From positions 8,494,001-8,558,000 of the forward strand of contig OZ059894.1 of NCBI GenBank assembly GCA_964057225.1: DNA of 64,000 nucleotides, read 5' to 3'. The translations under genes and the position numbers were made by a program. The first letter of the stretch is position 1. Each line of letters starts with the position of its first letter. Shown piece by piece: positions 20,601 to 48,073 of the stretch. The stretch comes from Auanema rhodensis. Its lineage: Eukaryota; Animalia; Nematoda. The notes beneath the pieces were generated by a model. The model made no database searches and was not told where the DNA came from. It saw nothing but the letters and a program-made list of their open reading frames with translations.

Positions 20601-23600
20601 ACATATATATGTATGCATAATTTATTAAAGCAGGTTGAGCCGATGCCATTTGAGAAAATTGAGTAAAATATTTTGAAATTGATATACAAATTTGAAATAT
20701 TTTTATATCAATTTCATATTCATGATTTTTATCAATTTTATTTTTGATTATTCTAATATAATTAAAGATTATACAATTTTCGATTTTCCACCAATTCTCT
20801 TTTCAACTTGAAACAATAATAGAATCTTCCTAAATGTTTAACTCTATTGTTCTTAAGAATATGCTACATAATTTTCGATCAATTTGATGAGAAATCTCAA
20901 AAATGCTTGAATTCCTTTTTTGAATTTCCATTGAAATATTATTTAAGGGAAATAATACTGCAAATATATGTTTATGTATATTTTTCCGTTGACTAGACAT
21001 ATATTACATATACATATGTATGTGTATCCATTAAAAATATAGGAATATAGCTAAAATATATTGATATGTGTGTGTGTGAAGAAGGTTATGCTCTAACCTG
21101 TTTATCTCGTTTCAAAGATTTTTAAAGTCAAAATTCCTTGATACCATTGAATTTCAATGTTTGAACAAACATTTATCCAAACTTATATTGATGATTTGCT
21201 TCAGCATAGCCCATATTCAAATATAAATATTTCACCATTTCTTATTTTCATTATACTACTAGGTTGACCATGCTGTACATTACTGTTAGTAGCTTCATTT
21301 CTTTAGTGTTGCACTCACTGAAGGCACAAATTCAGATGTTTGCAACCGTGTAGCCTATTTCAATCAGCTGCAAAAGACTTTCATCATGTTTTTCTTTAGA
21401 AGCTACACCCTTCTGCACGATATCAGGTGCAAAAAACGTTTCAAGAATGTTCGTTCATCAGGACATCTAAACGAATTTCATGAATTTCTCGATAATTTGG
21501 GCAATTCTCATTATTTTTTATAAATTTGCACAGTTTAAATAGAAGCAGTTAGAACAGTATAGGGTTCAATACCCTACATGACATCGTTGAGCGTTGTCCA
21601 GGCGACCATTCTTCTTAGACAGTAGGAAAGTGAGACCAGTTTCAGATGCTACATATGGCATGAACTGTAATTGAGGAACACTTCATCGTCCTAACTTGCT
21701 AATTCCAACAGTCATGTACTGAGGGAATTTTTGTTTTTGAAGATTTTCAGAACAGTAAAACTTCAATTTTTGTCTTGCCTTGTTCTTGTTCTCGTTCTGT
21801 TTTTTTAATGTGTGTGTGTGTGTGTGTGTACTAACAGCATATCGAGCTGTCAATTTGCATGAAATATTGCCATTTTGACATTGAACAGCAGGAGATAGAC
21901 TATTCAGCCATTTTTGATCGTATGATGAAGCTGTTATAGGAAAAGAGAAAGAGAAAAAAAAAGAGAAAGAGATGCGGCACAAATGATAGAACCAAGAATG
22001 AAGCTCCTGTGTTACTTCTTTGACATCCATTTTCACACTATACCGAACAGGTTCAGTTCATTTCCCTCTCGCTCTTATTTTCTTTTTTCGATTCTTTTTT
22101 CTTTCCAAAACACTCTCTTACTAGCTTCGGTTATATGTTACCTCTCGTTCTCACTGTTTTCTTTTCATTTCCTACACTCTTTCTCTCTCTCTCTCTCTCA
22201 CTCTCTCTCTCTCCCTCTCTCTCTCTATCTCTATCTCACATTCCACTTATCATCTTTTTAACTCTCCCTTTTTCCTTTACCCTTTTCGTGTCTATTCCAT
22301 TGGACTCGGTTGCTTTCCAATTATCTCGTCCTCTTCTATGTCTGTTTCCGAACGACACTAGCATTGTCCACGTTTGGTACGTAGTGCAATCTTCGTAGCC
22401 ATCATGGTCTACAGCTGATGGCGCTTTGTCTCCTTCATAGTAGTCGTCATTGCATGCCCATTCTGTTGGTCTCGTTAAAGTACCATTCTTCTGTGTCAAA
22501 ACCAAGTTTGCCATAGAAGCTGACTGTTATTTCTATCAATCTGTTGTTATAAACTTTTAAGATTTCAAAATATCTATTCTCATTCCTTCCATTGCTTCGT
22601 TGAAGTAACCCGTTCATCATCAAAGAACAGTTATGCCATTTGAATAAGCGAAAACACTAAAACTTCCTGAAATGAGAATCAAATCTATCACGTAGAATAG
22701 GTTCTTTTTTGGTGTTGTTTCCTTTTTGCGTTTACAGACTTCATGCTTGTTATGTCTGGAAAACAGCGGAACATCTGGGCTGTCTGTTTGCCATCATCTA
22801 GCCTCTCTTGATGTTTCTCGTAACCCTTTTGAAAGCATTCGAACTTGACCTTTCATCATAACACCTTTGACATAAAATTGAATGTTTGTTACATGACCAA
22901 AACACAAACAAGAAGTTTTGAGTTTATTTACAATTAGTAATTCATTTTCAGTTACCGCCCAGGACGACTTCCTCACAAACTTGATCCAACAAGCAACTAG
23001 TATGTCAGCTTCGCCCGGCGAGGTTGGTTTCCCTTTCACGCCATTCCATTCTCAGTTTGTAGTTCAATAGCCCATCTAATTGTTTCTTCTTATTACTTTT
23101 TTTGTACTTCGTAAAATAGAATCACTTTTTTTCTTATAGTGTCAAGAAAACGAAAGTGGTCTATCTCTCTCTGACGCTTTATTCCTGAACAAGCTGAACG
23201 AAAGCGCAATGGTGAGTTTCAAATTTGAATTGAAGCTATTCTGCCAGATACTTCTTTCAAATTTTTAATTATTATTTTTTCCAGACTGGCCCAGATAGTT
23301 CTGATCAAATATCCAACGGAGCATTAAAAGAAGAAGATGGTACATCTTCATCAGTTAGTGGAATGATCTCCAATCCGTCAGAATTTCATCTAAGTGAAGG
23401 CAATAGTGTTACGACACTTTTACAGGTTTGTTTCTTTCTTTTTATAAATTTGTGTGTAATCACTTGGATTTTATTAATGATTGCTTTTTGTTATCTTATT
23501 TCTGGAAAAACTCAAGAATTTACTGTCAAATTATGCCATTCTCGGGAACGTTTCATAGCCAAAATGTAGGAGAAAAAACGCAACAAACTGCCACATTGTT

Positions 23601-24418: not shown

Positions 24419-27400
24419 AGTTTCTCAACTTCAGATTATTCTTTTCTAAACTCCTTAAAGTTCTTTCTCTCGTGTCAAACTTTGCACAGGGCTGGCAAAA
24501 AAGCCATTGTTACTGGTTCATCCTTTCTATTATGTACTATTCTTGATCCCGAGTTTACATAGCCCAGTTCAACTTATTTTCTAAAGAATAATCTCACTTT
24601 CAATGTTCCAAAGCTTTTTATTTTATATTTTTTGAAACTTTTGTCTTAGAATTTTAAAATATTCCAAATTTAATGATTCCAATAATATACATATGTTATA
24701 TAATTTATTTGATGATTAGCCTGAAATTGCCAACTTCAGTTTTTTTTAAAATTTTTTCTTCTGAAAATTTCAATTGAAAAATGATATTTTGAATTTTTCA
24801 ATAATTTCGTATCAAAATCGAGTGTCCATACTAATTTGTAGGTATAATATTGTTTGATATACATATGTATGTATGTATGTATACTTATTTAATTCTTTTT
24901 TGTTAAATTTGAACAAAAATTAATTATAACTGTATGAAATAATTCATGTATAGGAAATATATTTCAATTTTTTTCTATTTTACAAGTACTTTTTTTTGTG
25001 AAACTGCTAATACGTCAACCTGAACAATATATAACATCATTTCATCTTATATAATGTATTTATATATTATAATTGGGAATGGTTTGACATTGTATCAACA
25101 GATTATCGTAAAATACGATCTCAGATGCCAATAAAGTATTTTTATTCTTAAAATTATCTTTTATTTTTTCTGATAATTTAAAGGAATTTCATAAAACAAA
25201 ACAAAAAAAAACAAGAAACGGAACTAATGCAATAAATCTGCTACAAGAAAATAGAATTTTCTTGATTTCATTTTATGTTTTAACGATATATGGACATAAC
25301 TGTTTCGATTTTTCAGGAAAAGAATAACAGGAAGAATATAACCGTGTGAACATTACAATACTGTTTCAAGCAATAGTTTACAAGTTAAAGACAACTTGTC
25401 CATCCTGTTCTATGAAGGTTGAGAGAGAATGCAACCGCTCAGATTTGAATTTTAAAACGAAATGAGTAATTAGAAAAGTAAAAAAAAAAGTAAAACGTCA
25501 AATTCACGTGAGACGTTGAAATAGCACATTAAGATAAATGACCAAAATATCAATTTTGTCAAAGAAACAGTATTCGATGTCTACTGTATAAATGAAAGTA
25601 CAACTAAATTTTCTATTAAAATGACCAATTGTTGATTATAGACCAATTATGCCAATTTCCAAGGTTTTTCAAAAAGTACTCATTTTTCTATTGTTTTCAT
25701 TGACATAATTACAAGTCAATTACAAGTCTAATTGGAAAAACTAGTCGAGGCTTCATCATGTCTCTTACGGCTCTCACTGACGGTCAGTCTGTGTTCTTGT
25801 CTGCGTAATCATTCAAACCAATGCGATTCGCTGATATTCTATGTACTGACCTTCGGTTCAGCAAATACAGACGATTGTGAATACGAGATTGTTTGGAAAA
25901 CTACTTCTATTTTCATATCAGTAGATTAATGATAATAGAATATATCTTACATATTGAATTATCAATCAATTTTTGTTTGTAACATTTCTAAACAGTATTT
26001 GTTCCAAAGTAGACAATGTGATATTCGATTATTAATGTATCATATTAAGAATTATCATTATCATTCTCAATCTTTTGAAAACAGACTTCTATAATCTTCG
26101 TCACACTCTTCATATATAGTTGTTTATGGAAGTAACTGTAACCGTAAACTGTTTTCACGTGTTCAAGTTCATATCTGAATATCTCCTCCTCCTCCAAATT
26201 CCACAACTATACGGCAGATGATAAAGACTATTAATGAATTTAAAAAGAAAAAAATACTACTGTCTATGCACGTGACAAGTGTTTAGAACAAAAAAATTTG
26301 TAATCTCCTCATCATCTCAGACTGTTTTTACGATGACCGTCTGTTTGGTTAAATAAAGTACACAAGCTGAAATCAGAAGCTACTTACTATCGTCGTTAAA
26401 TTGCTCATCTGTTGATTTCCGTCAATTTTGTACTCAGCGCATCGCCATATACATCGAATAGTATTCTCTCCCGTCTTGATCGTCAACACTCTCTTCTAGT
26501 TAGTTGGTCTATCACCGTCATCATCATCATCTCCTTCTTCTTCTTCTGATCCGCCAACATCGAATGTACAAATACACTGTGAGACATAAATACTATGCAT
26601 TCTTTTGCTTCCAACATTCCACTGTCTCATTTTCTTTGTTCACTTAACAAAACTTTCTTATTTTTCAGACAGAAGGTTTATTCATTATGATAGATATTAC
26701 TTTGACAATCTTTCTGTTTAAGCTTTACCCCACTTTCCCCTTTTTCTCTTTATATCCTTCTCTCTTTCTCTCTCTTTTTTGTCTCTATGTGATCTTTCAG
26801 AAAACTTCTGGAACTATCCTGTCTGGTTTAACCAACTAACAGACTGATGTAAACTGTCTCGTAACAATCACATCAATGATGTGAGCTTCATCTCTTCTCC
26901 GTATACCCTTCTCCTAAGCCTTCTTTCTCTCTTCCTCCTTTCACTCTCACTTGTTCTCCGACATAGACAGCTATAGCAATGTGCACTTATAGTTTGTGAT
27001 CTTCTTTATTTTTCGCATTGTTCAGCTTATCTTTGATTCTTTGATTTTCTTTTTTTACAATTATCTTATCGAATCGGCTTTGCCTCCCTTGTTCCGCTTA
27101 TTCAACTTGTATACATATTCCAAATATTTTTGTCATCTTTCAACATAGAACAAATCGTCGTACATAAAGATATGAATCATTGTCATGATATTTACATTTA
27201 AAAAAAAGATTTTATCCTTTTTTTGGCTTACTTGTCATCTGAAAAAACTATTTTTCTCATTCATAAATAATGAATACAAGTATTAAAATATGATAAAACT
27301 TTTCCTGAACAGTAGAATTTAGATTTTCCTCATTTGGCATGAGCAGATGTTTCAAAGATGTTTCATAGATTTTAAAATATGTATATTATACTATTAATAT

Positions 27401-30400
27401 ATCAAAATCAACTGCTTGTCAAGTGATTGATTACACGATTACTTTGATTTCCTATTTGACTTTTTGGCCTTTTTCAAATGTCTTTTCAACCCTTCTCGTA
27501 TACATGAATCTCTGTATATAATTTCATCTTTTTTTCCGTATTCTCACCTTTTTAAGTAATTCTTCTCCTTTTAAAGGACTGGTTCGAGATGTTCTTTTGT
27601 TTTCTTTATAAGTCATTTGCGTACTGTAAGTATAGGTGGTTGGATAGCATTCTCAAAATATTTCCAACTTTTGGCTATCAAATTTGAAAAAAAAAACAAT
27701 TTAGATAAACATATATATTATACATTTGTTTAGTATATGTATAGTTCAATATAAATAATAATAGCTAAGTGCGCACATAACAGATTAACCAAGAAGGAGA
27801 TTCAAATACTTACATGATACTTATGTTTTTCCTTCACCGAAACGGGTACAAGTTCAATATTCTGATGCCTATCCTATGCCTAGATGTGTTGCCCTGATTC
27901 TTTACAACTGTTTCTTCTGAATCATTTGTTTGACCTCACTTTCCGGAATCTGATCGACGAATACTGATACGATCATTAGGAAAGGTAAATGTGACATGGT
28001 GACAAACACACTTCCGATAATGGTGAACAGATTAAGAAGAGCGAAAAGTGAAGATCTGCAGCTGGATTTAGATTATGTTCATGGTTTAACGGCGAAAAAA
28101 CACTAATTTTCATGATAGTCTGGAAGTGTTTTTCAAATTTTTTCATCCAAAAAGTGTCTGGTCCTCTAGCACGCAGGTACATGGCGTAATCGAGCATCTA
28201 TATTCATTTTCTTGTTCTTGTTCAAAGATTGTATCTAGTCTATACGATAGCGGCAACTTTTCAACCACGTATTTATAAAATTCCTCTCATTCCTTCGATC
28301 CGTTAACTCGTCAACGTACTTTTTGTCAATTTTTATTATGAGATAATATAGTAAATTGTCCCGTTTTACTATTATTATTCCTCTTCTTTCACCTTGCTAC
28401 TTGGTGCTCTTTGAATTTTTGACAGCTGTGAACAACTAAACCACTGGTTGTTTCTTCTATGGCATCATCCCTTGAACAAAAAGTCGTAAAGTCATCAGAT
28501 TGCTTGATCACACAGAACTCAGCTGTGTCGACATTTTTTCGCTTTCATCTGCCATTCAACATCTGTATGTGTATCTTTCTTCAAACTATCTAGCTACCGA
28601 CACAAGAGATATCGTTGCCGTTCGATGTCGACTTTGTTGGATTTGAAAGACCTTTCCATAAAAGCAACTGATGCTATTCTGTGATTCTAATTGAAGCGAC
28701 GTTTATCATTATGATGGCATCGAGTACATCTACACACTAGAAGAAAACTTTAGTAACAGGTTTTTCAACACCATTATCGTTTATTTACACCAGCATTTCC
28801 TTTTTTTTAAATGGCGACTAGCCGATGTTGCTATCGCTATGAATGTGGCCGATCGAAATGTTAACTGTATTCTCCTCCTCCCAGATAGAAGCAACTACTG
28901 ATTGACAATGGAACAACAAATTGACCGCAACCTGTACAGCATCATAATAACTCATATCATCAGTGTGTATGATGAAAAATAATTCAATTAGGGATTTAAC
29001 CTACAGTTTATTACTTCTTATCTTCGTTTATTATATTTCAAGAATAGCCATTTCACTTTCCTCTTACTCCACTCATGTGACGGTTGGAATGTAGTATGTT
29101 AGTCAGGAGCATAGTACATGATGATTCAGGTGCTTCACCGTTGAAATGAATGTTCATTTACACATCGCATTCTTTACTTTATGCTCATCCAGACTTCTAC
29201 TATAATATTTTCATCGTTAGAAGCGTTCTTCTCGACAACATTATCATGTTCCATCTGCTGTCATACAGAATTAGTCTCGTCAGGTAGCATCGCAAAGACT
29301 TTAAGTTCAGCGTCGTCGTCGTCTTCTTCTTCTTCTTCTTCTTCTCCTTCTTCAACGTCGTCGTTGTCGTCCACCACATAACTTTGACGACTCTACCCCC
29401 ATTTATGTGGCTGGCCTGTTTCGGTATCTAGCTCTGCTTCCTGTTGTCTGTTTCAAATTGTTCGTAATGAATAAGCACATGATACGTCTACAATGTCGAC
29501 CGGAATCATATGATTCCGGTAGAAAGAAACCGCATATTTACAGTAAAAATCATAAATATAGAATAAAACATGCTTGATTAACTTCTATTGTATTGTATTT
29601 ATAATTTATACATTTATATTTTGTATTTCACTACGAAAGAATTGTTTGGAATGTGATAGTTCTATCCCTAACTTCTAAACAATAATAATCGTAGCATGCA
29701 GATTATTAGCCGTATTTTCGAATGATATTGCAAGATGGTCTAAACCACAGGACCGTCCGATGAGACCAGGGCAAGGAAGACATTGTCGTTGACGATTGCT
29801 AAATAGGCGAGAATGTGAGGAATGTACCTCCATCTTTCTTCTATCTCCACCATTCCTATAGTTTCTTGATTTCTCTCAGACGAATGAGCGGCGTTGGAAG
29901 CGGCAAGGACAGTCAAGATGACGAGGAGGTCTCTCGTCTTCTCTTCTCTCTTCTTGAAGTAAACAAATTGCCAATGTTATCTCTCTACGTACGTAAAAAG
30001 TTTGTGAATCTTGATGACACCTTCGTTCCGTATCACTCTCTATTCCTCTATCTCTATCCCTCAAATTTGGCTGAATCTTTTTACCTTTTCTCTCTTTCTT
30101 TCTCTGTTGCTCTTAACTACTCTTTTCTTTTACCTGTTCGACTCTTGCTAATTCCCAACATACGTATTACGTGAAGATATTTGGAAAGAATAAAAAGTAA
30201 TCTTTGTTATCTATTCACTCTTAAGTAGTTTCTAATTTCTTGCAATTTTTGCGCGAATTACCTTACTCACCTGGTTGATTGCGACCTTATTGTCATTACC
30301 GTTTCTTTCAACTGAATCCATTGCCACATGGGAGAATGGCATTTTCCTTTCTATTGATTGATATACTTGATTCATGTGTCAAACAAATCGATTATTCTCT

Positions 30401-31931
30401 TTAAATAAGTTCACAACCAAAAATTTTATCTACTGGCCTTAATCTACTGAACAATGCTTCGGCTCTTTGACGCAACGTCAACACTGTCAGATTTAACCTT
30501 ATGTCGTCGATCGGAATTTAAAGAATTTAATATATTTTCTTTTTTTTCCGAACAACACAACACATATTTTCATTTTTTTTTGATCAATTAATATTTAATA
30601 TAATGATTGATAAAATGCACTATATATGTCTAATACTATATGAAAGTATTTACAATTATTGTCCGGGGACATGTATACATACATATGTCTTTCCACCCTC
30701 TTCAATTCCAATTGCTCAACGATCATCGTAAACCATTGAAGCAGCACCACCGTCTTAGCCTCCAGTTCTGGCAGAGTTATGCAAAAAAAACCCGAATTTG
30801 AATCAGATAACAAGCAACGGGCTGTTCATCATCCTTTAGTATAATTTATGTACAAGCATTTTGCCAACGCTAAATCGGTCTATGTCATTCCTATCGACAT
30901 AATCATAACCACATGTCTATCTACATGTTTTTCTTTGAAATGATCGTGAACGTTATGTCTACGGGTATACAGAAGATGAAAGAATTACGACGACGGCACC
31001 ACGTCAAAACCTGTCGTCCTCGTCATCGGCATTAATGGCAAGCCAGCTTCTCTTTCTCTTTCTTTGATGTCCTCCCCTCTCATTTTCAAAAAGTTTATTT
31101 CCTTTTTTTTCAATTTTTAAAAGTTTAAATGAATCAATATATGATCCGTTTTAAATACAAATCAATCACGTATGCCACATATACTAAGTTCCAAATTTTT
31201 TCAGTCATAATTGACGCTTTTACGCAATATCTCTCCAGAAATTTTTTTTTCATCAATGATAAACAGGCTGATTGATAAAAATTCACAACGCATCTAAATT
31301 TATAAATCAAAATGTAATGCTTTGAGAAAAGTAACCAAAGTTTGATTTTCGTAATTACATCTGTTTATCTGCAACTATGATCAACCATCAAGAAGTCGTT
31401 TTTTCAGTCTAACTTTTGTCTTCTTCAGCTTTTTGCTGTTTAGTCCTCTATCCTTTTTTTTATTCCGTGCAAATAATGTTTTCAAACATTACAAATGTTT
31501 TTTCATTATTCCCTTCGCAATTTCCTATTTTCTAAAAAAAAAGAGAAAAAATTGACCTATAACCTAAACTATTATCAAAAATGAAGTAACAAGATGATGA
31601 ATACCTTATGTTTTGAACATTGAATTGAATTGAAGAATTATTTGAATTTTTTCATCATTGTTTGCAACTAATAAACATATATCTATGATTTATTGTTATT
31701 TTTTACCTGTATGCATGACTTCACTCCATATGACTATAAAATGTTTGAAATTTTTCTATTTTTCCTTATTTCATCATAAACTTTTTCCCATTTTAAGTAT
31801 CAACAATTTTTCTGACTTTACCTTCAACTTTCAATCATTTTCTTTTTCAAAAACTTCTCTTCACGTTTCACGTTGCAATGACGTGAATATTTCTATTTCA
31901 TTTTCATTCTTGTCGACGCATTGACCGGCTG

Positions 31932-31934
<3 letters not shown>

Positions 31935-31997
<63 letters not shown>
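31935..31997. repeat. (TC)n microsatellite, ~31 units
   Basis: Direct reading. Confidence 0.95.
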
Positions 31998-32001
<4 letters not shown>

Positions 32002-33353
32002 ATCTTCCCCTCTGTTGTCGTTAGCTTCCTAACTTGTTTAAACTGCCTTTCTAATAACTTCTCGTAACGAAAAATCAAAGTGGTCAGTTAAAGTTAAGTT
32101 TGTTTTCTAGTTCGATTTCTTGTTGCTCCTCTTACGCAGTGCATTCCGTCGTGCTACTACTGATCTTCCGTTCTATTCGTCTCTTTCTGAAGCCGTTAGT
32201 CAAATACTGGTCCTCATGAACGGAGCATTAACATCTGTTTCAGCTCATTTGTTGACCTGCTTCACGTGTTCTTAGAATTATATCAAAAATAAGATTTAGA
32301 GCTTTTACACATCCACGCAGCTATCTTACTACTGCTTATTTTGGTCATTTAGAAATGTTTTTAATTATTTGTTCTCTTAAATTAAGGAAAATACGTTACT
32401 TTTATTATATCCATATATGTATACCATAAAATATGTATATACATATATTATATATTCTAACTGATTGCAAAGAAAATGACCTGGTCTTATCAATCATCTT
32501 ATTACCATTTAAGGATTTACCGTCACTCTATCTCTCTATCCCTCTTTCTCTCTCTCTCTCTCTTCTTTTTCCACTTATTTCTCTCTTTCATTTTTGTTCT
32601 TTTCATTGTTTTCTACTGTCTCTATCAATACCTGTACATCTTTCTCTCAGTCTCTATCAATCTATTTCTCTCTCTCTCTCTCCAAATGTCTCTATCTCTC
32701 AATACATCCCTATGTCTTGCTCTATCTTTTTTTCCATCATTTTTTCTGCCTTCCTTCTGATTATCTCGCATACTACAATTCCTTGTTCTTTACTGATTTT
32801 ATAACCTGTCTGAAACTCTACTAAATTCTTATTCTCTATCACATACAAATTTCTCTAGTTGAGAGATTAGCTAAATAACTATTGATCATGTATTTCCTGT
32901 AAGTCACAAATGTATAAGGAGTTGAGCTTTTCTGTGTACGAGATGCAAGAGCATTCAATTCAATATTTTGTTTTATTTGTACTATATTTTCTGTATTTTT
33001 TCATTTTGATCGTTTCAATTTTTTTTACTGCATGAACCGATCATTTGTAAATTAGTTGTAATATGAGTAGCCAGTTTTTAAAAAACGTTCGTACTTCTTT
33101 GCTTACCCCTCCAATCCTTACCACATTGCTACCAATACCATTCACAATTTACCTTACCTTGATTTTCTTTTTTTGAGCTTTAATTAAACTTAAACCCGTT
33201 TCAATTTTCTCAATTATTTATTTATTTATTTATTTTTATTGGAAAAATCCATTTTATCCCGTTTATCTTATTTTTTCAAATACAATTCTATTTTTACTAT
33301 TCTTGTTATATTTAGGCAGTTGGACCTTGAAAATCAGTTTGTTAAAAATAAAT

Positions 33354-33355
<2 letters not shown>

Positions 33356-33396
<41 letters not shown>
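33356..33396. repeat. (AT)n microsatellite
   Basis: Direct reading. Confidence 0.95.
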
Positions 33397-33402
<6 letters not shown>

Positions 33403-33984
33403 TATTGACCTTACAATCTCTAGTTCCCTCCCTCCCTCTCTCTCTTTCCCTCTCATTCTCTCTCTCTCTCCCTTTCTCTCACTACTTCTCAGTTTTTTCT
33501 CTCCTATCTCTATCTTATATTCTATATTCTTCTCATATATCGAGAGTCTGACTTTTTTCCATCTTCTTCGTTTTCTCACCATATACACACACAACGCACA
33601 GAAATCTTATGATTTTTATCGCATTATTTCTGGTAATTATCATTTCTGACATTCTTCAAGTTATTTATCCATGTTATACCGTATTTTTCTAATATATGAA
33701 ACTGTATTTCTGTTTATATTTTGCAATTGAAAAGAACTGCAAGTTTTCCCGGTGTAGCTGTCTTAATCAAAGAGATTTTTTTCACTATCATCACAATCAT
33801 GTGTTACATCTTTTAATCTTCGGTTTTTCTAAACATATGTATATTGTTACAATTAATGCTTCCATATTTAGTTTATTAAGTTTTAGTTCAGTAACGTTTT
33901 TTTTATAAATCTAAAGAGCTTCAATTCTGTATATTTTTTATCCCTCTGCCCCGACATCGTTTCTATCTGATATCTATCTCTACC

Positions 33985-33987
<3 letters not shown>

Positions 33988-34036
<49 letters not shown>
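33988..34036. repeat. (TC)n microsatellite
   Basis: Direct reading. Confidence 0.95.
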
Positions 34037-35291
34037 GACACACTCTTTATTACTCTCCCTTAAAGTTTCTACCTCATCACTCTCTCTTTCCCTCTTTACC
34101 CCACCCTATTCAATTTATTTATTTCTTCGATCTCTACATCCACCTCACTTCTACTTTTTCATATCCTCAACTCCTTGTATAACTCTGACCACTTTATCAA
34201 TTAGTGTTTCCGTTTGATATCATTCGTTCTTTTTTCTAGTATTTTGAATGTCGAACGTCTTAACATTTTTTTTGATTTCCTTGCTTCCAATTGAGTCAAT
34301 TATTAGCTTTTCCTTGTTCAATTTTTGATAAGCCATTTGTTCCATGCGATATGATTGCTTCTGACGACAACTTAGAAGATCTCGACCTTTACTATCCAGT
34401 TTTCGCCAATTTAGAGCGTCGGCGAGTAAACAAAACTTCGCCTTGATCATTATACGACAATCATTGACGATAGAATTACCAGTATTCTGTATAGAACTCC
34501 TCAGAGAGAAATCATGCCCGTAAGCAGCATATATTACGTGTACTCCGTAGTTCCTCATATCTCAATGAAGATATGACTAAGGAAATTCCAATCACTGCGT
34601 CATTTCACTAGTTGCTTCTAATTGCACTAAACAACTCTAGCACAGTTGGCATTTTATGAGCCATTCATTCAGATATTCTTATCATTTATTTCAATGTGAA
34701 TAATATCGTTTAGATATAAGATTAATCATAAGTTTTTATACAAAGAACATTTCGCATCAGCATTACCATCAAATAAAAAACATCAGAATGACTCATCAAT
34801 CTCCTGCTTTCGATCTCTGAGTGAAACTTTGGATATTTTGTGTTATTTAAGCTATTCGCTATATCTCTGTTATTCATTTTTCAAGATTGTTCAGAATTTA
34901 GGTCGTTCATTTATTTTTTATCTTTTTATGTTTTTTTAAAAAAAATCATTAAAATTGATCATATACACTCGTCAGAAATTTCTAATATGTCTATTATGCT
35001 GTCCACATTTTATTTTTCCTTTTTTCTTCTTCTTCGTCTACTACATCATCTTTGTCACAGTCTTCTAGTGCATAACGTTGGTCGATGACGTCATGAATGG
35101 TCTTCGATGTTTTCCATCATTTCTTGTATTCGGTTATAGAACTTTTTAATGAACTGTTGACTTAAACAAAGAGTTGAAGAGGGATCAATAGAAATATAAT
35201 AACAGTTTCTACATTACATTTTTCGCTTTTGCTGGTGTCTTTTCGTTTCATTTTGTCCAAGCTGTTGAAAAGTAATTAGAATCCTCTATTA

Positions 35292-35297
<6 letters not shown>

Positions 35298-35340
<43 letters not shown>
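35298..35340. repeat. (TA)n microsatellite
   Basis: Direct reading. Confidence 0.95.
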
Positions 35341-35342
<2 letters not shown>

Positions 35343-38300
35343 TAGAACCGTATAGAATCTAAACAGGTATTTATTCGATCAACGTAGTCGTTGTCTCTGT
35401 CGTCGTACCCCCTGCTTCGGTGTAAGTTCAGCTTGATCTCTCCTATTTCATCTATCTATCACATCCATGTTATCATTTTATTCAGCTTTTATTGTCATTG
35501 TCAAATTGGTTTATTTCTAGCAATGAACTGACGCTTACGCCGTCAGTTCGTCTATTCAAATTCCCGCTTTGAGATAACGATATCTGTTTTTTTTTGATCA
35601 TGTATCAAATGGTCCATTCGTTTAAGCTTATAGTCAAGATTTCGGACAATCAGAGGCCATGACGACGCTAGTTTTAACCTGCCTAACCATTTCGTTATCA
35701 AAGGCTTCTCCTCTGTCATTCCATTCTTCTTAAGAATTTTCATTATTTATTATGTTTGGTAATAACAAAGACGTCACCACAGCTGATGTACCTGATGGCC
35801 ACGAGAAACATAACGTTAACGATGGATATGGAGTTACTAAGATTTGTGAAGGCCAGACGATAGAATAGAAGAAGATATCTTTCTCCTACTTTACTATATC
35901 CCACACATACAAGGTGACCTGACAGTGATGACGGGATTTGCCAAAAGAAATGAGTAGGCTAACAGCCATAAACTGTCCTTGTAACGGTCCGCCGGGTCAG
36001 ATGCGACCTTGACGTCGGCTTTCCGTCGTCGTCGTTGTCGTCGTGGTCTTCGTTATCGTGGCCGTAGCCGTTTACCTGCTATCCGTCGCCATACTCGTCT
36101 CCTTTTTCCACTTCGTTCCTTTTTTCTTGGCTAGTACTTTTTTCTTAATCTTCTCCTTTTGTCACGTGCATCCCTCCACTCATCTTCATGTCTCACACAC
36201 ATCGAAAAACATTTTGATTTTTTATATATTTTTCTCTAATCTATGAAGAATTTTTGTCTCTTCTCAGTCATATACTGCTGGCGTAACGTGAATGTGCTTC
36301 GCAGACTTTAATCTTTTTTTTTGCTATGAGGTATTTTCGAAATGCGATGTTTGCTTACTAGTTGTATATCATCTCTGTAGATTTACATTTCTTGTACATA
36401 CCGTTCACAGCTCCAGATAACACATTCCTACAATCAACAGGAAGACGGGTTTCGGCATTTGTCAGCTTATTTTCACTCCTAATACTCTTATCAATTGTGT
36501 TGGACTCATTAGATATTTATTCGGACAGGTGGCCAATTTTTAATATTCTCTTTGTATAACCTTTGTTTTACTTTTTCCCTCGTATCCCTCCACGTATAAT
36601 AACCGATTTGCTCATTCTCCTGGTTCAGCTTTCAAGAATCTCTTCATGTTCAATATCTTGTATCTCTTTTCATATCACTTATTTCAATACACAAAGAAAT
36701 ATATAGAGAACATGTAACGAAGAGGTATAAGGGTGGTCATCGTCTAACATGCCCCTTGCAGTCCCTGATCTTTTTTCTGTTAACCACAATCATTGCGTAG
36801 CTGAATTGGAGAAAGATTGGCGGTTACGAGAGACATAAGACCGTTAACGGTTAGGGATTCAGACATTCATATATGAAAAGAAAGAACATGCATTCCAATC
36901 CTCATACAGACAAGGTATGCTGAACCCTCTTTCCCCCTCTCTCTTTTTCTCTCTCTCTCTCTCCCTCTCTCTCCTATTTCTCTCTTTCCCTGTAGACATT
37001 TCTCTTTCTTCTCTATCACCTTTCGCTCTCTCTGTTCCTTATTTCTCCCTTCGTTTCTTGCCCCGTATCACTTACGTAGTGTTGGGATCGACAACCGGTT
37101 ACCGGTTCTCTGCACCATCTCCCGTACACACTACCCAGTCTTTTAACCATTCCAACCCTATCTCTGCGATATCACCTTTGTCGTCTCCCCTTTCGTCTAT
37201 CATCATCATCATCGTCGTCGTCTTCTTTTTATTCTTCATCTTCTTCATATTGATACCATCGCATCCTTCACCACCGCTGCACCACAACCGCAGCAGCTAA
37301 ATAATTTGACAGCATTCCGTAGCATGACAGCAATCACAAATTGATCAGTTTTTTCATATTGTTATCTTTTTTTTCGTCTACTATGTTTACGTTCAAACAT
37401 TTAGTTTTAGCCGTTTACCTCATGTATTGACATCAAATCAGATACGAGCATAGCTGTCAAGAAACTTTCTATTTGCCATCCTTGATTGTTCTTCTTTACC
37501 GATGACCTTCTTCACCTGTTTTGATCTTAATCAGCAGCTGCAAGTTTCAGCTTCTAGTCTAACTGATCTATATCGGAGCACAGCACGTGAATGTCATTGC
37601 CTTACGCACTATCCCACCAGCGATAACCAATTTTGGAGTTCAATTCGTTGTCTATGAGCTGTTTTGATTTTTGCTCTCATTCCATCATTCAGTGTTTTCA
37701 TTTTTTCTAACTGCCTTGTTGTATTTTTTTGCATTTTTTATGAAAAAATAGCTTTTTTTGTATTTAAACTTCCATTTATATCAATCATCACTTTTAATTG
37801 TTTCTGATTTTGGAATTCTTCAGATTTGACCAATGTTACCAGAGAAATTGCACATGAAAGAATCTCATTCTCTTGTATTGTTACTTTTCTTTTGAAAAAA
37901 TTTTATTCGTTGTTGTTTGAGGATCATTCCATTCGTTTAAAAAAGCTTGTAAACATGAGGTTTCTATCTTGCAGATGTTTGTTTCGCAGTTCTTTACAGC
38001 CCATGAACAGAACTTCCATCTCTCAAAATAAGCATCGTTCCAATTCTTTTGCTTATAGCTTGCTAATAAATTCGAACCATTTTAATAGGTTTGTATACTT
38101 TTTCTCAAGTGCATCATATCACATTCTTGATCAACATTTATTATTATTCATTTACATGGTCTGTGGTTTTGGCTCCTTTTGCTTTTATTTGAATAATTTT
38201 TACTTGGCTCTCGTTTTCTCATTACCCACATCAATTATCACTCCTATCACTTTTCTCTTTCTACCTACTTTCTTAGGAATTATTGTTTTATGTTGGTAAA

Positions 38301-38932
38301 GCAGCATTGAAGATTTGAATTTATAATCAGATTGTATACTCTTACGTAAAATATTGTTTCGATGCAATCGTTACAACATCTAATTATGTGAAAATCTCAG
38401 ATTTTTTTTGTAGATATCATACTCAGATTATTCATATCGCTATGTTCTCAGTTCATCTACTTGACTCTGTCTGATTCTTTCTCTTTTCTCTGTTGTTCTC
38501 CATCTACATAATCAACCAAGAAGCCCCCAGAATTCCGACGGCCCATTATTAATAGGAGGAAAATTTTTCTTATCTGCCGATAAGAAAATTCTTTCGCATT
38601 TATGGGCTGTTAAGATTCTCTGCATCCACTACACTCTCTCATTTCCTTCCTATCAACTCTGCATGCTTTTCACCTCTCAGCCGAAAGCCCGTTCTTCCTA
38701 ATTTATTTTATTTTTTTTTATCTTTGCCATCAAGCTTGAAATTCTGTGAAAGTTTGAATTTTCACAGCACACCTAATGGAATGTTCACGTACTCTGGCTA
38801 TTTCTAAGTTTAGGTTTTTATTTTTATACAATTATCCTGAACCAAAGCTTAGTATGACAGATTACAACTAATAATTCGGTTTAAAATTCCTTCTCTTTTC
38901 ATTCTCTCCCTCTCTCTCAACCTCTTTATCTT

Positions 38933-38934
<2 letters not shown>

Positions 38935-38963
<29 letters not shown>
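38935..38963. repeat. (TC)n microsatellite
   Basis: Direct reading. Confidence 0.9.
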
Positions 38964-38965
<2 letters not shown>

Positions 38966-40859
38966 CAACCTACATAACTACCTAACTAATTCTATCTCTT
39001 TCCCTTTGCTATATCTTTAGCTTTTTGACTAAGAAACTTTTTTCTGTTCGGCATAAGCAAATATAGATAATAATCCAATCAGCAATCTCTTTGCTCATTT
39101 CCAGTAATTGGTTTTGATAATCAGCTGAATAGTATACTTTGTCATTCTCCCTCCTCTCTCACCGATACGTTTTTCTTTTTTTTCTATTTTTCAGCAGCTA
39201 TTCTTTCTATTAATCTGTCTGGCTACCGTTTTCAATCGCCTTGTCTGGCGCTTTGTCCTCATTCTTTGAGAAGTTCAACAAGCTTTACTCACAATACAAA
39301 CTTAGATTTTTACGTTTTCAAAATGTTTCTATATCGATTATATGATGTCTATTCTCTGTTGTGATTACATTTTTCTTTCATTTTTTATTTCACCTATATA
39401 GATATATTCTTTAGTTTTATTTTTCTTCTCGCTTTTTTTACATCTTTTCATCTAAATTTGTTTTTTTTCTTTACCTCTCTCTCTCTACCGCCCCATCATC
39501 TCTCTCTCTATCTCTCTCTCTCCCCCCCCTCTCTCTCTCTCTCCCTGGTTAATTCATTTTTCCTATCCTCTTCCATATTCTCATATCTCTTGTTCTTCTG
39601 CAGTTTTTGAATTCGGTCTATTTTCTTCGATGTTACTCATTGATTATTTTATATCATAACACAATACATTATGTTAATCTTTTTACTATTGTATTTCAAC
39701 ATTCTTATATAATTTTATACTTTATTTATATGTCTTGATTAATATCATCTGTTGTTTTAATAGCTTAAACGCTCCTTGCTTTTAAATTCTATTTTTTTTG
39801 TATACACTAAGACGTTTTAACTATCTACAATGTAGCACTCACTTCTACTCTTTGAGTTTTTTCTTTCTCTTCCCTTTACAGTCGCTTTTTGCATATTTTC
39901 TGGATATACAACATTATTATTCTAAAAATATTCTTATGATTAAGTTCAAACTATATTTACTGGTTTGTTACTTCTTCTTCCCATTATCTTTATGCAATTT
40001 TGCTAACAACATGACTAATAGTTGTGCCATAAAACAGTTAAACTTTCTGTTGCATCTCTATTTTCATTTTCTAATTTTATAGAAATGAATTAACCTATAG
40101 CTTTAGATGAGCAAAGCAATCATGTTCTAACTATATCAAAGAGCAAGTTGTAGTGTTTACGCTTAATGTTCCGAAAGTCTAGTGTGTGCATTTCCTCGTT
40201 ACCTCTCTTGTTCTCAACTTAATATTTCACTTGAACTGTGTGTGTAATCAAGTTATCATCATCATTTAACTGTTTGTGTGGAAATTACATAAAAAGTGAT
40301 GTTCAAAACGTTTCAAAAATCATCTGGAACATTCCTGAGAATCTTTCATAATTATTTTGTCTAAGTCCTGGTGATAAATTCGAAGACGCCGGACACCGAA
40401 AGACGGAAAGACAGTAACATTCACAGATAGCCGTCAACATTCCTAGCTCAGATCGATTTCTTGTTCTTATCGATAAAGATAAGAGAAAATTACAAGAAAA
40501 TCAGCTAAAACTCCTATTCTATGTTTCTGAAAATTTATAATAGAAAAAGGAGAATGTTGGCTCGCATATTAAATTTATTATTATTTGTAATATTTTGTCT
40601 TCTCATCGAATTCAAAATTTATATCAAATTCCACATATGTTTCAAATATTTTTTATAAACATTTCTCAATTCTTGTCGCTATCAGCACATGTAATAGAAA
40701 GGAATAGCGTTCGGCTTTTCCTTTTTCCAATCAAGCTGCATGTGGCTGCGTTATAGTTTTCCTTCACTCTTTATAAGAATGATGGAATGCCAAAGTAACG
40801 ATGAAAAGTCGAATAGTTATCTTCTGTATGTGAGACATCGATAGAGAAAAAGAATGAAG

Positions 40860-40876
40860 GAGAGAGAGAGAAAGAT

Positions 40877-40942: not shown

Positions 40943-40946
<4 letters not shown>

Positions 40947-41797
40947 GAAAGTTAGTCTTATGTGTAAAATTATTACAGTAATGTTTCATACACACACATA
41001 CATACACACATATGTATACCATTCACATTTTTAGAAGACGTAATATGATTCGTTCTTGCTACTTACGAATATATGTTCATGAACACTTGCCCTCGTCTTA
41101 TTGTTAAACTGTTGAATATCATCACGCTCTCTTGAAGCTTTCTGTTTGCCTTTGACGATCATAACCAAAACTGTCTATCCCACAATAATCTGTGATCATT
41201 TGTTGATGTTGGCTTGGCTACTGGCCAGTTAATAAGTACTGGTAGTTTGAAACACTGAGAATCGGAAGAGGCTCTGGCAAAGAGACACCTCTTCATCCGA
41301 TTCATGTTGTTTAGTTGATATGCGTCGAAATGCTGTTGCTTGCAAATTCCACAGGTATTTGTTATTAAAGCTCTAATACAGCTTTGCAAGCTGCAAAAAA
41401 CCAAAACTCCCTCTAATCAACATTTTTGCAAAAAGGTATTTCAAGTCGTTAACAGTTCAGTGTGAAAAGCAAATCCTGCACCGCCACTAGTACTCTCACT
41501 TTCTCTGATTTGTTCTTAATCTCCTTAATCTACTATCAGCTTTCTGCATTTTTTCGCATCGTTTCATTAACATTCAGAACGTGTCTAAGTTGTTCATATG
41601 TAGTCAGTTGATTTACCTGCTGTCAATTTTATTGCTCGAAGATATTTTAAACCCGTGACAAGCTTTATGTTGTTGATTTTGGTTTTTTTTTGTTTTTTTT
41701 CCTTCTCATATGTTATTTCGTCTAGATACTTTGTGAATATATAGAGATAGATAGATATATTTTCATTCATTTCAGTACAAGATTGAATGCGCAGGTA

Positions 41798-42811
41798 ATG
41801 GAATCACCGTGCTCGACGCCGAGCTCCAGTCGGTCGCGCGGCGTCACCAACGACAGCGCAACCTCATCACGACTGCCACATCATCTTCTGCAACCATCCT
41901 CAAGCAACTCAGGTAAATATTTCGAATGTTTTTTCTACTTTGAAGCATTCTGAAGTATTTATTCATTTATGATCAAAGTTTTACAACGGATTGATATATC
42001 CACCATTATCTATTCTAACATGATGACAACGAATATCAAATTAGCTTTTCATTTTTTCACAATGTCAATCCTACGTTCATAAATCAATATAAGAGTATTG
42101 TCACATACATATCATACATAGTTTCTTGAATATCTTGTGATATCAAACTATGTAATCTATTCAATTAGATCACGTTATTTTTGTCTTTTATGCCTGAGAG
42201 TACATAAAAGTATCCTAGACTAATGGGGGGGGGGGACTACAGATGTCAAGGACAACCCGAGTTTCATGGTTTCTCAGGTTATTATAAAGATTTTTGCCAA
42301 TTATCATTGTTATTATATATCTATATTAAATCAAATAAATTCCGATGATTAGTCATATATACTATCACTCATAAGCTACTCGTACCCTCTGGAAAACGGA
42401 GCAATCATAATAAACTAACTGATTACTCATAGAAACAAATAAATCAACAATAAGCTAATCGTACACATTAAATTTGGCCAATATAATTCTTACCTGCTTA
42501 CTCATATTCCTATATTTCAGGCCCTGCTGTGCATTCTACGTCAGAACATAGTATTCGTCCTGGTCAACCATACGTCACTGTACAAACTCTGAATAAAGAA
42601 AATCTGGTTATCGTAGTTAATGTAAGTTTTATTTTTTAATTTTCTTTCCTTCCTCTCTTTTTTCTATGAATTTTTACATGAATGAATGAAGCTTATTAAT
42701 TAGCATAGATAGTATTTTCACGTGTAAAATAGGCGCGTGACTTAGTTTTCTAGTTTAATCATCCAGTGAACGGTTGCTTTTTAATTCATCTTTTTTTTAT
42801 TTAATTCATTG

Positions 42812-42853: not shown

Positions 42854-45800
42854 ATTATTTTCTGTTTATAATTCTTATGTAAAAAAGTTATCAGTTTTAT
42901 TACATAGGATTATCAGTCGTCAAATTCTTAAAATTATATTCTCTTACATGATGTATTATCAGTTGAGAAATTTGATACATCATGAGCTACAACTTCTAGT
43001 TCAGTTCTTTATTTAAATGTTTTTTTTCAGCAAAAAACCCGCGTTCATGATATTCTGTGGAAATGCGGGGAAATTCTTGAAATAACAGAAGATAAACTGT
43101 TTGGATTAGCCTTACGACAACCAACAGATGGTATAGGTATAGCCTATAATCAAGTCTATAATTATAACTTTTAAAGCATATTTAGGAGGAGATCAACCAC
43201 GACATGAATATTTTTTTCTGGATCCCGCCCAGAAAATCTTCAAATATGCGCCAAAGCAACCTCGATTTTCTAACTGGGTAAGTAAGCTTCTTCTTCTCAA
43301 TGTTGACTGACTTGTCATAATTTCCATTCTTCAGCATAATCGAAGTACGGAAAATCGACCGTTGCTAGTTTTGTATTTTCGAGTCCGTGTGTACATAGAA
43401 CAAGTACGGTTAATTACGTAAGTATATTATATTCATTTTTTCAAATCGTTTTTGAGTAACTATCGATTAAAGTCATCTTTGAATAAGAAACACAGATAGG
43501 AAATGATAAAGAGGGTGAGATTGGATGCTTGATTTCGGGATCATTTTCTGATCAACGTATGTGAAATAGAATACAGAAAGACACCGAGGGAAATTCTAAA
43601 TCATATCATATCATATTTCATATTGTATTTAAAAGACAAAGCAAAGGCGTTAGAATATGAGAGATAACATTCCATGATCATCTTTGGCTTCATACCAATT
43701 TCGCTTTCAATAACGGTCTGGAAGGTATCATTTCATGATATTGGTTTCGGAATTTCTTTTCTCTTTCTCATCGTTATAGAACATGTTCTAACATAGATCT
43801 ATTATCCCTTTCTTATATCTTTATATGTATATATGTATACATATAATTAGAAAGAGAGAGGGAGAGAGAGAGAAAATCTGTGGGATCCATACGCAAATTA
43901 TAGGCAACTTGTTCACTCTAGTCACTGTTGATTTCAATTTCTTCGATTTTAAGAAATATAAATATCCACCAAATCCTCATATGATATGCAAAGCGCAACC
44001 TTAATTTGAATTAAATAATAAATAAAAATTTATTTCAAGAGGGAATTGATATGATTAATTTCGGAAAATGGGGGAATGCAAATGAAAATACTTTTCTTTA
44101 ACTACCATATAAAGATATAATATCTCATCATATACTTTCATCATTTGTTTTTCAGATGTTCGAGAGCATTAGAACATTACTATTTGCAATTAAAAGATAA
44201 TTTTCTGGACCAATGGTCTGGACGACATAGTGTATCTGAAGGCCGATGTTGGGAAATGGCGTCCCTCGCGTTAAGAGCCGATAAAGGGGATAACCCTGGA
44301 GGGTATGACCTGATAATACAATAGCCTTTTCTTACCATAATGTCTTTTAGCTATTTTCGTGCAGAACAGTACTTTCCAATGTGGGTAATAGATTTCCGTG
44401 GTTTGGAATACGTGCGTAAACATATGCCAACAGCTTTTGATGATCTCAAAGACCTCTCTAAGAAAGATGCCATGACTCAGTTTTGTCTAGAAGCTTGTCG
44501 GTATGTTTATTAACTAAACAAGCGTTATTTTATTTACATTCTTATAGATCCCCCTTTGCCTTAAACTGTCATTTGTATGCTTTACGACGGCACAAAATGG
44601 ACAGTGTAGATAATGCTGTTATTGGAATAAATGCCAAGTAAGGCTAAAAATATGAATAAATAACTATTTTATCCTTTTTCAGAGGAATTGAGATATGTGA
44701 TATTGGAAAAGAGTTTGAACGAGTACCGCTACGGTCATTGACTTGGAGTCGAGTGACCCGGCTTTCTTTCGATAGAAAGAAACTTACGATAGTTGGAGCG
44801 GATGGCACAAAGATGTCGCTATATGCTCAGAGCGAACATAAAGCGAAGTAAGAAAACTTGAAAATAAACTTTATGCTTATAACATGTTTCTCCAGATATC
44901 TGTTAGAACTGTGTCGTGCTGTACATCAGACCCTTCTTGTATTTTCACATCAAACGGCTCGCAATGCTCCTTTGCCACAGCCATTCCTGGAAAAAAGTGT
45001 AGATAGATTGTCAGCCTCATCAGCATCCGGGGCTGTCACAAACGATAACGGTAAACTTTCTACAAAAGGGTCGCAAAGAAAGAATTCCTTTTTTCAGATT
45101 CTGATTCAGTTGTACAAGATTCAATGAGTAGTTGTGATAGAGGACAAGGATCAGTAAACTCGAAACATCGTATTCGAGTTAAACTTGATTCAAATTTAGA
45201 GCTTAAAATCGAAAAAATGGAACTCGAGAGTAAGACTAATTTGTTTTTAACTGTTTTTTTATTTGTAGAATTCAGGTATTCGACAGGAAAGAGCAGCCAG
45301 TCAATCATCAAAGGCATCTGAAAGCAGTGAGCATCGAACATCCGATATCACATCTTTCCCGACAGACGATGAAGTACAGTTCTCAATTCCTTCAGTTGAG
45401 ATTATTCAACTACCTTCTGCTAATTCTTCTGCTTCCACCACAGAATCCACTACAACGTAGTAAGCATTACAGACCATTACTCATAATTACATAAACTATT
45501 CAGTCGGCCGTCCTCTGTTGATTCTGCTTCTCAAACAGTTGAGACAGGTACTCGGATTGGTCAAGTGGATTTTAACTTCAATAACAAGCTAGATCATATT
45601 GAGCATGATGGGTTTGCTTCTTCTGCTACTTTCGGCAACATGGTATTCATGGTACAAATTTTAAAAAACACATAAATCTTCAATGAAATATTTGCAGCCT
45701 GAAGCACAGTATGCTAGCTCTGCTGGATCTAGAAGCGATTCAGTTCAGCAATCTAATGAAATGCTTCCTGATCTTATGATAAACAGTTATCATCATCATG

Positions 45801-47948: not shown

Positions 47949-48073
47949 ATTTAAAATAGTTAAAATCACAAATAAATAATCAGTAAAAACTCAACATTGA
48001 ACAATGAAATATTCTTATACGCAAAAATTTTGATAGAACCGACTGCTAACTCAAATTGAAAAATGGATTGTTC

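Follow-up and report, generated by a model that had tools for sequence, protein, structure and literature searches.

In Drosophila, expanded (ex) is a transcriptional target of Yorkie/Scalloped and the classic example of negative feedback in the Hippo pathway, an upstream inhibitor induced by a YAP/TEAD-type output, and ex-lacZ serves as the standard reporter of Yki activity. NF2 and AMOTL2 are mammalian feedback targets of YAP/TAZ-TEAD. In Caenorhabditis elegans the core Hippo cassette of WTS-1, YAP-1 and EGL-44 is established, EGL-44 being what we take to be the single TEAD factor of nematodes. The worm pathway is often viewed as rewired and as having no known upstream membrane inputs; to our knowledge, its upstream membrane regulators and feedback architecture are poorly defined in C. 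elegans, and frm-7 is essentially unstudied. LATS2 is a further feedback target of YAP/TAZ-TEAD in mammals (PMC5029684), and CATTCC has been described as the EGL-44/YAP-1 response motif in the promoters of C. elegans immune-response genes (Ma et al. 2020, PMC7454999). For Tead, both a single motif, RMATTCCWD, and a double motif, RMATTCCNNRMATTCC, have been reported, the latter as a cooperative response element; the double-site register favours cooperative TEAD binding, YAP may stabilise it further, and weak double motifs were still active (Dalal et al. 2025, PMC12008814).

The locus analysed here lies in a window of 64,000 nucleotides from the nematode Auanema rhodensis. It resembles Drosophila ex in that the putative target is orthologous, an Expanded/FRMD6 FERM protein with PPxY motifs, in that CATTCC motifs are enriched in its flank, and in the proposed logic, whereby the output of the pathway would induce its own upstream inhibitor. 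It differs in being known from sequence alone and in having its sites spread over tens of kilobases rather than gathered in one response element. The mammalian targets likewise carry TEAD-bound elements at genes for upstream Hippo inhibitors and provide homeostatic negative feedback, but they are other genes, backed by ChIP and reporter assays, and mammalian FRMD6 itself does not rank with the best-documented direct targets. The C. elegans targets of EGL-44/YAP-1 share factor, motif and phylum with the proposed case, whereas at those infection-induced genes the sites cluster no more than ~1 kb from the start sites, and those described here extend across 10-20 kb or more beside the gene of a pathway component.

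By its protein matches, the gene is the Expanded/FRMD6/frm-7 orthologue, which agrees with the Expanded-like identity given to it in a first-pass annotation of this DNA. Protein searches used one exon of the gene, together with database orthologues, as the query, and the exons were not joined into a spliced protein. The exon matched only 28 representative proteins, the named ones among them being nematode FERM-domain proteins; FERM_N/M/C domains are present in the family, among whose members are CBR-FRM-7, FRMD6 and 'protein expanded', and insect Expanded was matched in the same search. PPxY motifs are visible in the open reading frames at 45683-45985 and 46166-46537. RNA contigs place the start of the mRNA at a trans-splice-type acceptor (ttcag, 41775/41776); the contigs themselves begin at 41774 and carry 3-9 unmatched 5' letters, which are consistent with a spliced leader. 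The first exon (41776..41908, + strand) is joined to the second (42517..42621, + strand) over a 608-nt GT..AG intron. The ~21 kb upstream of the gene (about 20.2-41.8 kb) contain no recognisable gene, and no Pfam-recognisable ORF was found in 20.2-41.7 kb. We looked for hidden 5' exons within the proposed enhancer and found none: the RNA contigs start at the ttcag acceptor and none maps to 36.8-41.77 kb, with the proviso that it is a guess that the sequencing runs are of RNA, and that contigs cannot prove the absence of upstream exons. The placement of the sites upstream of the gene was borne out: they precede the mRNA start and lie in DNA without a recognisable gene.

A motif search recovered all 12 RCATTCC/GGAATGY sites that had been listed between 26614 and 40790, as well as the intronic one at 43667. 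The first of the sites in the gene-free DNA before the frm-7-like gene lies at 22238..22244 (+, ACATTCCAC), and is followed by sites at 26614..26620 (+, again ACATTCCAC), 29086..29092 (-), 29648..29654 (-) and, beyond the site at 29819, 32141..32147 (+, GCATTCCG). Three sites on the + strand form a sub-group inside 900 bp (36422..36428, 36890..36896 and 37312..37318), and a single one lies at 38778..38784 (-). The promoter-proximal trio comprises 40329..40335 (+), ~1.4 kb before the trans-splice acceptor, 40437..40443 (+), and 40784..40790 (-), which adjoins a (GA)42 microsatellite at 40860-40942. The upstream sites can be grouped into three sub-groups, at 28.3-30.5, 36.4-37.3 and 40.3-40.8 kb. 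The intronic site at 43667..43673 (+) falls between the orthologue-aligned exons 43330-43445 and 44149 onwards. The earlier list was incomplete, with nine more sites at 44073-55297, and the first 24 kb hold three sites rather than about two. A second intronic site lies at 44073..44079 (-); the other eight (46715, 46827, 48964, 49980, 53177, 54349, 54394 and 55297; range 46715..55303) occupy the end of the gene and its 3' region, and lie in or between two FLVCR/MFS-like genes. A repeat origin of the window sites was ruled out because all flanks differ (25 of 25 unique).

The site at 29819 is part of the double site that had been claimed at 29810-29824. It is present at 29810..29825 (-) as ACATTCC-TC-ACATTCT, with direct-repeat halves exactly 2 nt apart, and thus shares the exact direct-repeat, 9-bp register of the Tead double motif (PMC12008814); its second half is mismatched (CATTCT in place of CATTCC, one mismatch to RMATTCC), and any cooperative binding of EGL-44 there is putative. 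A relaxed match to the double motif, AAATTCC-TC-TCATTCC, lies at 28278..28293 (+), where one half fits RMATTCC and the other has one mismatch.

The density of the motif around the Expanded/frm-7 gene is three to four times that expected by chance. For 26614-40790, strand-aware local Markov models of order 0-3 predict 2.5-3.3 sites and dinucleotide shuffles, a background that the first-pass annotation had proposed, gave 2.61 +/- 1.48; the maximum was 7, and 0 of 300 shuffles reached the observed 12. These values agree with the rough expectation of ~3 sites in the annotation, and the same models and shuffles rule out an artefact of strand composition. The whole gene-free span (20200-41775) holds 13 sites against 4.0 expected, again with 0 of 300 shuffles as high. 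RCATTCC ranks fifth of 4096 R+hexamer patterns in 26614-40790, below three microsatellite words and the GATA-like RGATAGA, and 10 of its 12 occurrences there have A or T after the core. The nine further sites at 44073-55297 bring 41.8-56 kb, a stretch that takes in the gene and 8 kb past it, to 10 sites where 2.7-3.0 are expected, and so to the same density as upstream. Over the whole window there are 25 sites against 13.4 expected from composition, and all 25 are confined to 17.4-55.3 kb, a span of 37.9 kb (p 2e-5 to 4e-4); a scan-corrected test against composition gave P ~0.002. Given 25 sites, it is unremarkable for some 14.2 kb stretch to contain at least 12 (p 0.09-0.17). A discrete upstream cluster or enhancer, as first described, did not hold up: the excess extends for ~38 kb, across the body of the gene and the transporter genes next to it, and its reach over the latter blurs the assignment of the sites to frm-7.

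An excess of RCATTCC recurs specifically upstream of the frm-7 orthologue in most of the nematodes checked. The comparison covered nine other nematode loci (Heterorhabditis, Steinernema and Panagrellus not among them), with 10 kb upstream of each orthologue and with gene bodies and downstream flanks of the same loci as controls (~173 kb of gene and downstream DNA); the null models draw on local composition and flanking DNA rather than on the upstream regions of all genes in a genome. Pooled upstream DNA contained 55 sites. Shuffles put the expectation at 20.5 +/- 4.1 (maximum 32, z 8.4) and an order-3 model put it at 25.6 (P 3e-7), whereas gene bodies (29 sites, 23-27 expected) and downstream flanks (22 sites, 20-22 expected) were at expectation. 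The upstream DNA set against the rest of the same loci gave a binomial P of 3.7e-5. Upstream counts were 18 against ~7 in Caenorhabditis, 27 against 12-16 in strongylids and 10 against 1.5-3 in the spirurid Thelazia. Eight of the nine orthologues were above expectation, and three had no significant excess, namely C. elegans (4 against 2.4), Haemonchus and A. cantonensis; ~3 of the 10 Nippostrongylus sites derive from a repeat family or local duplication. Long strongylid introns showed no RCATTCC excess. Among 4096 patterns RCATTCC ranked third in the orthologue upstream DNA, where it led the 60 composition-matched permutations as well as all words that do not resemble microsatellites, compared with a rank of about 740-2000 in control DNA. 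That a pre-specified motif was replicated in independent loci, with internal controls at expectation, counts against chance. Purines preceded the core more often upstream (R:Y 55:32) than in controls (51:64; Fisher P 0.006), and A or T followed it in 43 of the 55 upstream sites. This flanking-base preference is what would be expected of TEAD, and it matches the single motif RMATTCCWD.

In the window, unlike in the orthologue loci, the excess is no weaker across the gene itself and the transporter genes beside it than it is upstream.

These patterns suggest that the gene-free DNA at ~20.2-41.8 kb may be a dispersed homotypic array of EGL-44 sites rather than one compact enhancer, and that the array probably extends into the introns and the 3' flank of the frm-7-like gene. 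Many moderate-to-strong R-CATTCC-W sites, a few of them in the cooperative double-site register, would confer EGL-44-responsive transcription, with the co-activator YAP-1 as the most likely partner of EGL-44. The predicted product, an Expanded-type membrane FERM protein with PPxY motifs, would restrain Yorkie/YAP and so provide negative feedback, a loop that would close because the product is orthologous to fly Expanded. That EGL-44 occupies the sites, that transcription depends on YAP-1, which sign the regulation has and that the protein inhibits YAP-1 are what we infer. TEAD/EGL-44 input appears likely, and the balance tilts slightly towards a functional EGL-44 input to this gene; a complete YAP-1/EGL-44 feedback loop is rather doubtful. 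A dispersed EGL-44 array upstream of frm-7, with YAP-1 feedback, is in our view the best explanation, which we hold tentatively and with a little under even confidence. The 'YAP-TEAD -> Expanded' reading of the first-pass annotation thus gained from the orthology, the non-genic upstream position of the sites, the recurrent excess and the TEAD flank preference, and lost its discrete enhancer. In the literature searched we found no regulation of frm-7 by yap-1 or egl-44, and the three papers found to name frm-7 do not concern Hippo signalling.

The motif counts are silent on cofactor and sign of regulation, and the sites might be real EGL-44/TEAD sites that are used without YAP-1 or without feedback, either for tissue-specific (e.g. 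epidermal) expression of frm-7 or for repression together with a VGLL-type cofactor or EGL-46. In FLP neurons EGL-44 is a DNA-binding repressor that works with EGL-46, and it can do so independently of YAP (10.1101/320978), and frm-7 mRNA is apically enriched in embryonic epidermal cells (PMC9793419). We nevertheless regard this alternative as unlikely: upstream Hippo inhibitors are recurrent YAP/TEAD-induced targets, ex in flies and LATS2 in mammals (the latter PMC5029684), and a few of the sites are paired in the register reported to help TEAD bind cooperatively (PMC12008814). A cause other than TEAD, be it another factor that binds GGAATG-like words or a property of long regulatory intergenic DNA in nematodes, seems quite improbable. 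It would suit the coverage of neighbouring genes by the window excess, and the nulls comprise local composition and same-locus DNA rather than long intergenic regions genome-wide; however, the first rank of RCATTCC among permutations and non-microsatellite-like words upstream of the orthologues, the fit of R before the core and mostly A/T after it to the TEAD motif, and the long strongylid introns without an excess all speak against it, and we know of no other well-known factor family with an RCATTCC consensus. Finally, chance or composition, i.e., a motif sought beside a suggestive gene whose count merely fluctuates in pyrimidine-rich, microsatellite-laden DNA, is very improbable, since although the region has a strong C/T skew and abounds in (TC)n tracts, the clustering of 12 of 25 sites within 14.2 kb is not unusual and the core CATTCC ranks only 119-217 of 2080 hexamers over the whole window, the 12 sites far exceed every model and shuffle, the scan-corrected test disfavours composition and the excess is replicated in the orthologues.

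The most similar protein available shares only 59% identity, blastn aligns exons only, and the upstream DNA of the window gave only exon and microsatellite matches, without aligned sites, against the nine orthologous loci. Judged by site density, the excess upstream of the orthologue is a conserved feature, and motif-bearing conserved blocks occur in Caenorhabditis and strongylids. A near-identical block of ~90 nt shared by C. elegans and C. briggsae (about chrV 12,297,060-12,297,170 in C. elegans) holds CATTCACATTCACATTCC and two further CATTC units. In strongylids an intronic block of ~115 nt, almost invariant across five genera, holds GCATTCCATTCC; as a candidate RNA gene it was rejected, having neither an Rfam match nor covariation. 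A search of the window for the conserved blocks of strongylids, both intronic and upstream, found neither, save for a 15-nt match at 19358-19372. It is tempting to speculate, though we consider it rather unlikely, that YAP-1/EGL-44 -> FRM-7 (Expanded) feedback is ancestral in nematodes of clades III and V and is upheld not by conserved enhancers but by continual site turnover within a dense, dispersed TEAD array, which occupies an upstream stretch without genes that is of unusual length. The worm Hippo pathway would then retain a fly-like Expanded module.

The excess, recurrent across distant nematodes, nominates frm-7 as a candidate direct target of EGL-44 and a candidate upstream Hippo regulator, and makes a possible worm Hippo feedback loop a concrete, testable idea, for which the C. 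elegans chrV block and the strongylid intronic block are the concrete elements nominated. In parasitic strongylids and filarial relatives, the frm-7 locus could report Hippo activity. Upstream of the orthologues, relaxed matches to the double motif had ~5 times the density found in their gene bodies and downstream flanks, the numbers being small.

A search of both strands for the TEAD/Scalloped-type motif RCATTCC recovered exactly all 12 sites that the first-pass annotation had listed between 26614 and 40790, upstream of the Expanded/FRMD6/frm-7 orthologue (first exon from 41776, plus strand), and the intronic site at 43667. The listed sites were correct, but nine more, up to 55297, had been omitted, and the first 24 kb, credited with about two sites, contain three. 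For 26614-40790 the prediction is 2.5-3.3 sites from strand-aware Markov models (orders 0-3) and 2.61 ± 1.48 from 300 dinucleotide shuffles, of which the highest gave 7. Here RCATTCC ranks fifth among 4096 R+hexamer patterns, behind three microsatellite words and RGATAGA. The whole window holds 25 sites against 13.4 ± 3.8 expected, a count attained in 0 of 100 dinucleotide shuffles, with null models throughout built on local composition and the flanking DNA of the same loci rather than on genome-wide long intergenic regions. No two of the 25 sites have the same flanks, which rules out an origin as repeat copies.

The excess had been proposed to be an upstream cluster, but it is not a discrete one. 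All sites lie within 17396-55303; 1-17 kb of the window has none where 3.1-3.6 are expected, and 56-64 kb also has none. The latter interval is mostly a tandem array of tRNA genes with a 244-nt period (57543-64000; Rfam matches at 57561 and 57805), and because this array is devoid of sites the effective background is shortened. The interval 41776-56000 has 10 sites where 2.7-3.0 are expected, a density equal to that upstream, and six of the extra sites fall in or between two paralogous FLVCR/MFS-like transporter genes (48645-50200, minus strand; 55400-56600, plus strand), recognized by eye from ORF translations. Given 25 sites, 12 within some 14.2 kb stretch is unremarkable (p 0.09-0.17). Two features are unusual: the count relative to composition (scan-corrected p about 0.002) and the restriction of every site to 37.9 kb (p 2e-5 to 4e-4). 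The nine extra sites, the equal density past 41776 and this restriction thus define a domain of ~38 kb, with the gene at its centre and sites roughly three times as frequent as expected. The excess covers the gene body and neighbouring genes too, a pattern that the orthologous loci lack.

Gene identity was searched with one FERM exon, taken by reference, and with database orthologues. The exon yielded only 28 protein matches among 1.8 billion representatives, the named ones being nematode FERM-domain proteins, and the Heterorhabditis orthologue as query matched CBR-FRM-7, FRMD6 and 'protein expanded' proteins as well as insect Expanded. The closest full-length relatives share only 53-59% identity with the window's exons, which points to a clade V nematode without a close relative at hand. 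Putative spliced RNA contigs of 3.1-3.2 kb, present in four small runs that we guess to be RNA, start at 41774, right at a ttcag acceptor, carry 3-9 unmatched 5' letters and join 41908 to 42517 over a GT..AG intron; no such contig from these runs maps to 36.8-41.77 kb. From this start, the unmatched letters, presumably a spliced leader, and the empty interval, we read the mRNA as trans-spliced, with a promoter that would lie farther upstream. An ORF with a BED zinc finger (19884-20132, plus strand; Pfam E 5.8e-5, passing the curated cut-off) probably represents one exon of a small gene bounding a gene-free span. Nine further ORFs, reaching to 41.4 kb, gave no Pfam domain, and Rfam gave no match between 15 and 57.5 kb, so that ~21 kb upstream of the gene are free of recognizable genes; this span contains 13 sites against 4.0 expected. 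The plus strand of 24000-42000 is strongly pyrimidine-rich (GC skew to -0.32, AT skew to -0.29), with many (TC)n/(GA)n microsatellites, including (GA)42 at 40860-40942 just 5' of the gene. Farther left, minus-strand ORFs at 840-2006 and 7910-9210 resemble by eye a myosin heavy-chain motor domain and a GTPBP1-like GTPase.

We then compared nine orthologous loci with 10 kb flanks, from C. elegans, C. briggsae, C. bovis, Thelazia and the strongylids Haemonchus, Nippostrongylus, Ancylostoma ceylanicum, Necator and Angiostrongylus cantonensis. In blastn only exons align with the window, and the comparison is therefore one of motif density, not site-by-site position. The pooled upstream 10 kb contain 55 sites against 20.5 ± 4.1 in shuffles (maximum 32 in 300, z 8.4) or 25.6 under an order-3 model (P 3e-7), in species that are phylogenetically related and whose upstream sequence is almost entirely unalignable between genera. 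Gene bodies, which in strongylids are mostly long introns, hold 29 sites (23-27 expected) and downstream flanks 22 (20-22 expected); a model-free comparison of upstream with the rest of the same loci gave P 3.7e-5. In the upstream DNA only two of 4096 patterns, both microsatellite-type words, rank above RCATTCC, which also comes first among 60 composition-matched permutations; in gene and downstream controls its rank is about 740-2000. It is specifically the TEAD-like form of the motif that is in excess: R:Y before the core is 55:32 upstream and 51:64 in controls (P 0.006), and A or T follows the core in 43 of 55 upstream sites. Eight of nine species exceed expectation, with individual significance in C. 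bovis, C. briggsae, A. ceylanicum, Nippostrongylus and Thelazia, a marginal excess in Necator, and no significance in C. elegans (4 vs 2.4), Haemonchus and A. cantonensis. About three of the 10 Nippostrongylus sites derive from a repeat family or local duplication, and the pooled result survives their removal. The upstream regions of Nippostrongylus (locus L007:3959-4146, 5924-6163, GCATTCC in each copy) and A. cantonensis (L005:1104-1185, 2733-2930, 4196-4404, 6823-7030) share an interspersed repeat family of ~200 nt.

The site excess is best read as a homotypic array of dispersed EGL-44/TEAD sites, through which the Expanded orthologue would respond to EGL-44, most likely with YAP-1 as partner. 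CATTCC already serves as an EGL-44/YAP-1 response motif in C. elegans (PMC7454999), and YAP-independent repression by EGL-44 with EGL-46 has been described (10.1101/320978). By analogy with the role of Expanded in flies, EGL-44 and YAP-1 acting on the orthologue would close a negative-feedback loop; here we infer EGL-44 binding, the cofactor, the sign of regulation and the protein's inhibitory function. We slightly favour a functional EGL-44 input at the gene and consider the complete loop rather doubtful. The earlier TEAD-cluster and feedback interpretation stands in part, for the excess, its upstream recurrence in orthologues and the flanking bases, but not for a discrete cluster. The proposed double site is real in its register: on the minus strand, 29810-29825 has ACATTCC and ACATTCT separated by two bases, the arrangement described for the cooperative Tead double motif, RMATTCCNNRMATTCC (PMC12008814), but with one mismatch in the second half. 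In the literature searched, three papers mention frm-7, all on subjects other than Hippo signalling, and look-ups of frm-7 in supplements were empty. Judged by sequence, the locus would add a new example to a known class of circuits and lends itself well to tests in C. elegans.

The region upstream of the orthologues (loci L001, L004-L009) is unusually long and contains hardly any called genes or none, also in Caenorhabditis, whose genomes are compact. It spans ~8.8 kb in C. elegans, 8.1 kb in C. bovis and at least 8-10 kb in strongylids, and in C. briggsae the first 10 kb are free of called genes. In Haemonchus and Nippostrongylus, short ORFs of 174 and 74 aa have been called ~8 kb upstream. 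A stretch of ~90 nt is near-identical between C. elegans (-5.5 kb) and C. briggsae (-7.1 kb); it has a CATTCA-CATTCA-CATTCC run, a CATTC unit in inverted orientation and one more CCATTCC, and C. bovis has a recognizably similar site, ACATTCCG..CGCA..TTT. A 43-nt block, TGATTTTGATTTGATTGATCACGA...GATTAGTTT, is also conserved upstream in C. elegans, C. briggsae and C. bovis (L006:7014-7054, L009:5461-5503, L001:6782-6824). In strongylids, a conserved block 2-5.6 kb upstream (L004:4356-4413, L007:4610-4667, L005:7800-7920, L008:4495-4537, L003:539-621) centres on the palindrome CTGTAATATTATTACAG followed by GATAGTTCGCGCCATTT, and is without a TEAD motif.

An intronic block of ~115 nt is almost invariant in the five strongylid genera (L004:12732-12870, L007:12138-12280, L008:18915-19050, L003:7739-7877, L005:11613-11750). 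It contains the words ACTTCCTGTTATC, GCATTCCATTCC, TATCTATATCT and TAAGGTCA, GCATTCCATTCC adjoining ETS-like, GATA-like and nuclear-receptor-like words. Like the ~90-nt Caenorhabditis stretch, it carries the TEAD-type motif. An RNA gene was rejected, as Rfam gave no match and no covariation pointed that way; the block has the look of a deeply conserved enhancer. Neither this block nor the palindromic upstream block was found in the window. A GGAATGT lies within 19332-19372, ~500 bp 5' of the BED-finger ORF, and 19 nt on, AAGGTCAGAACATTG matches the nuclear-receptor-like tail of the intronic block at 15 of 15 positions (blastn-short E 0.007), which may be chance.
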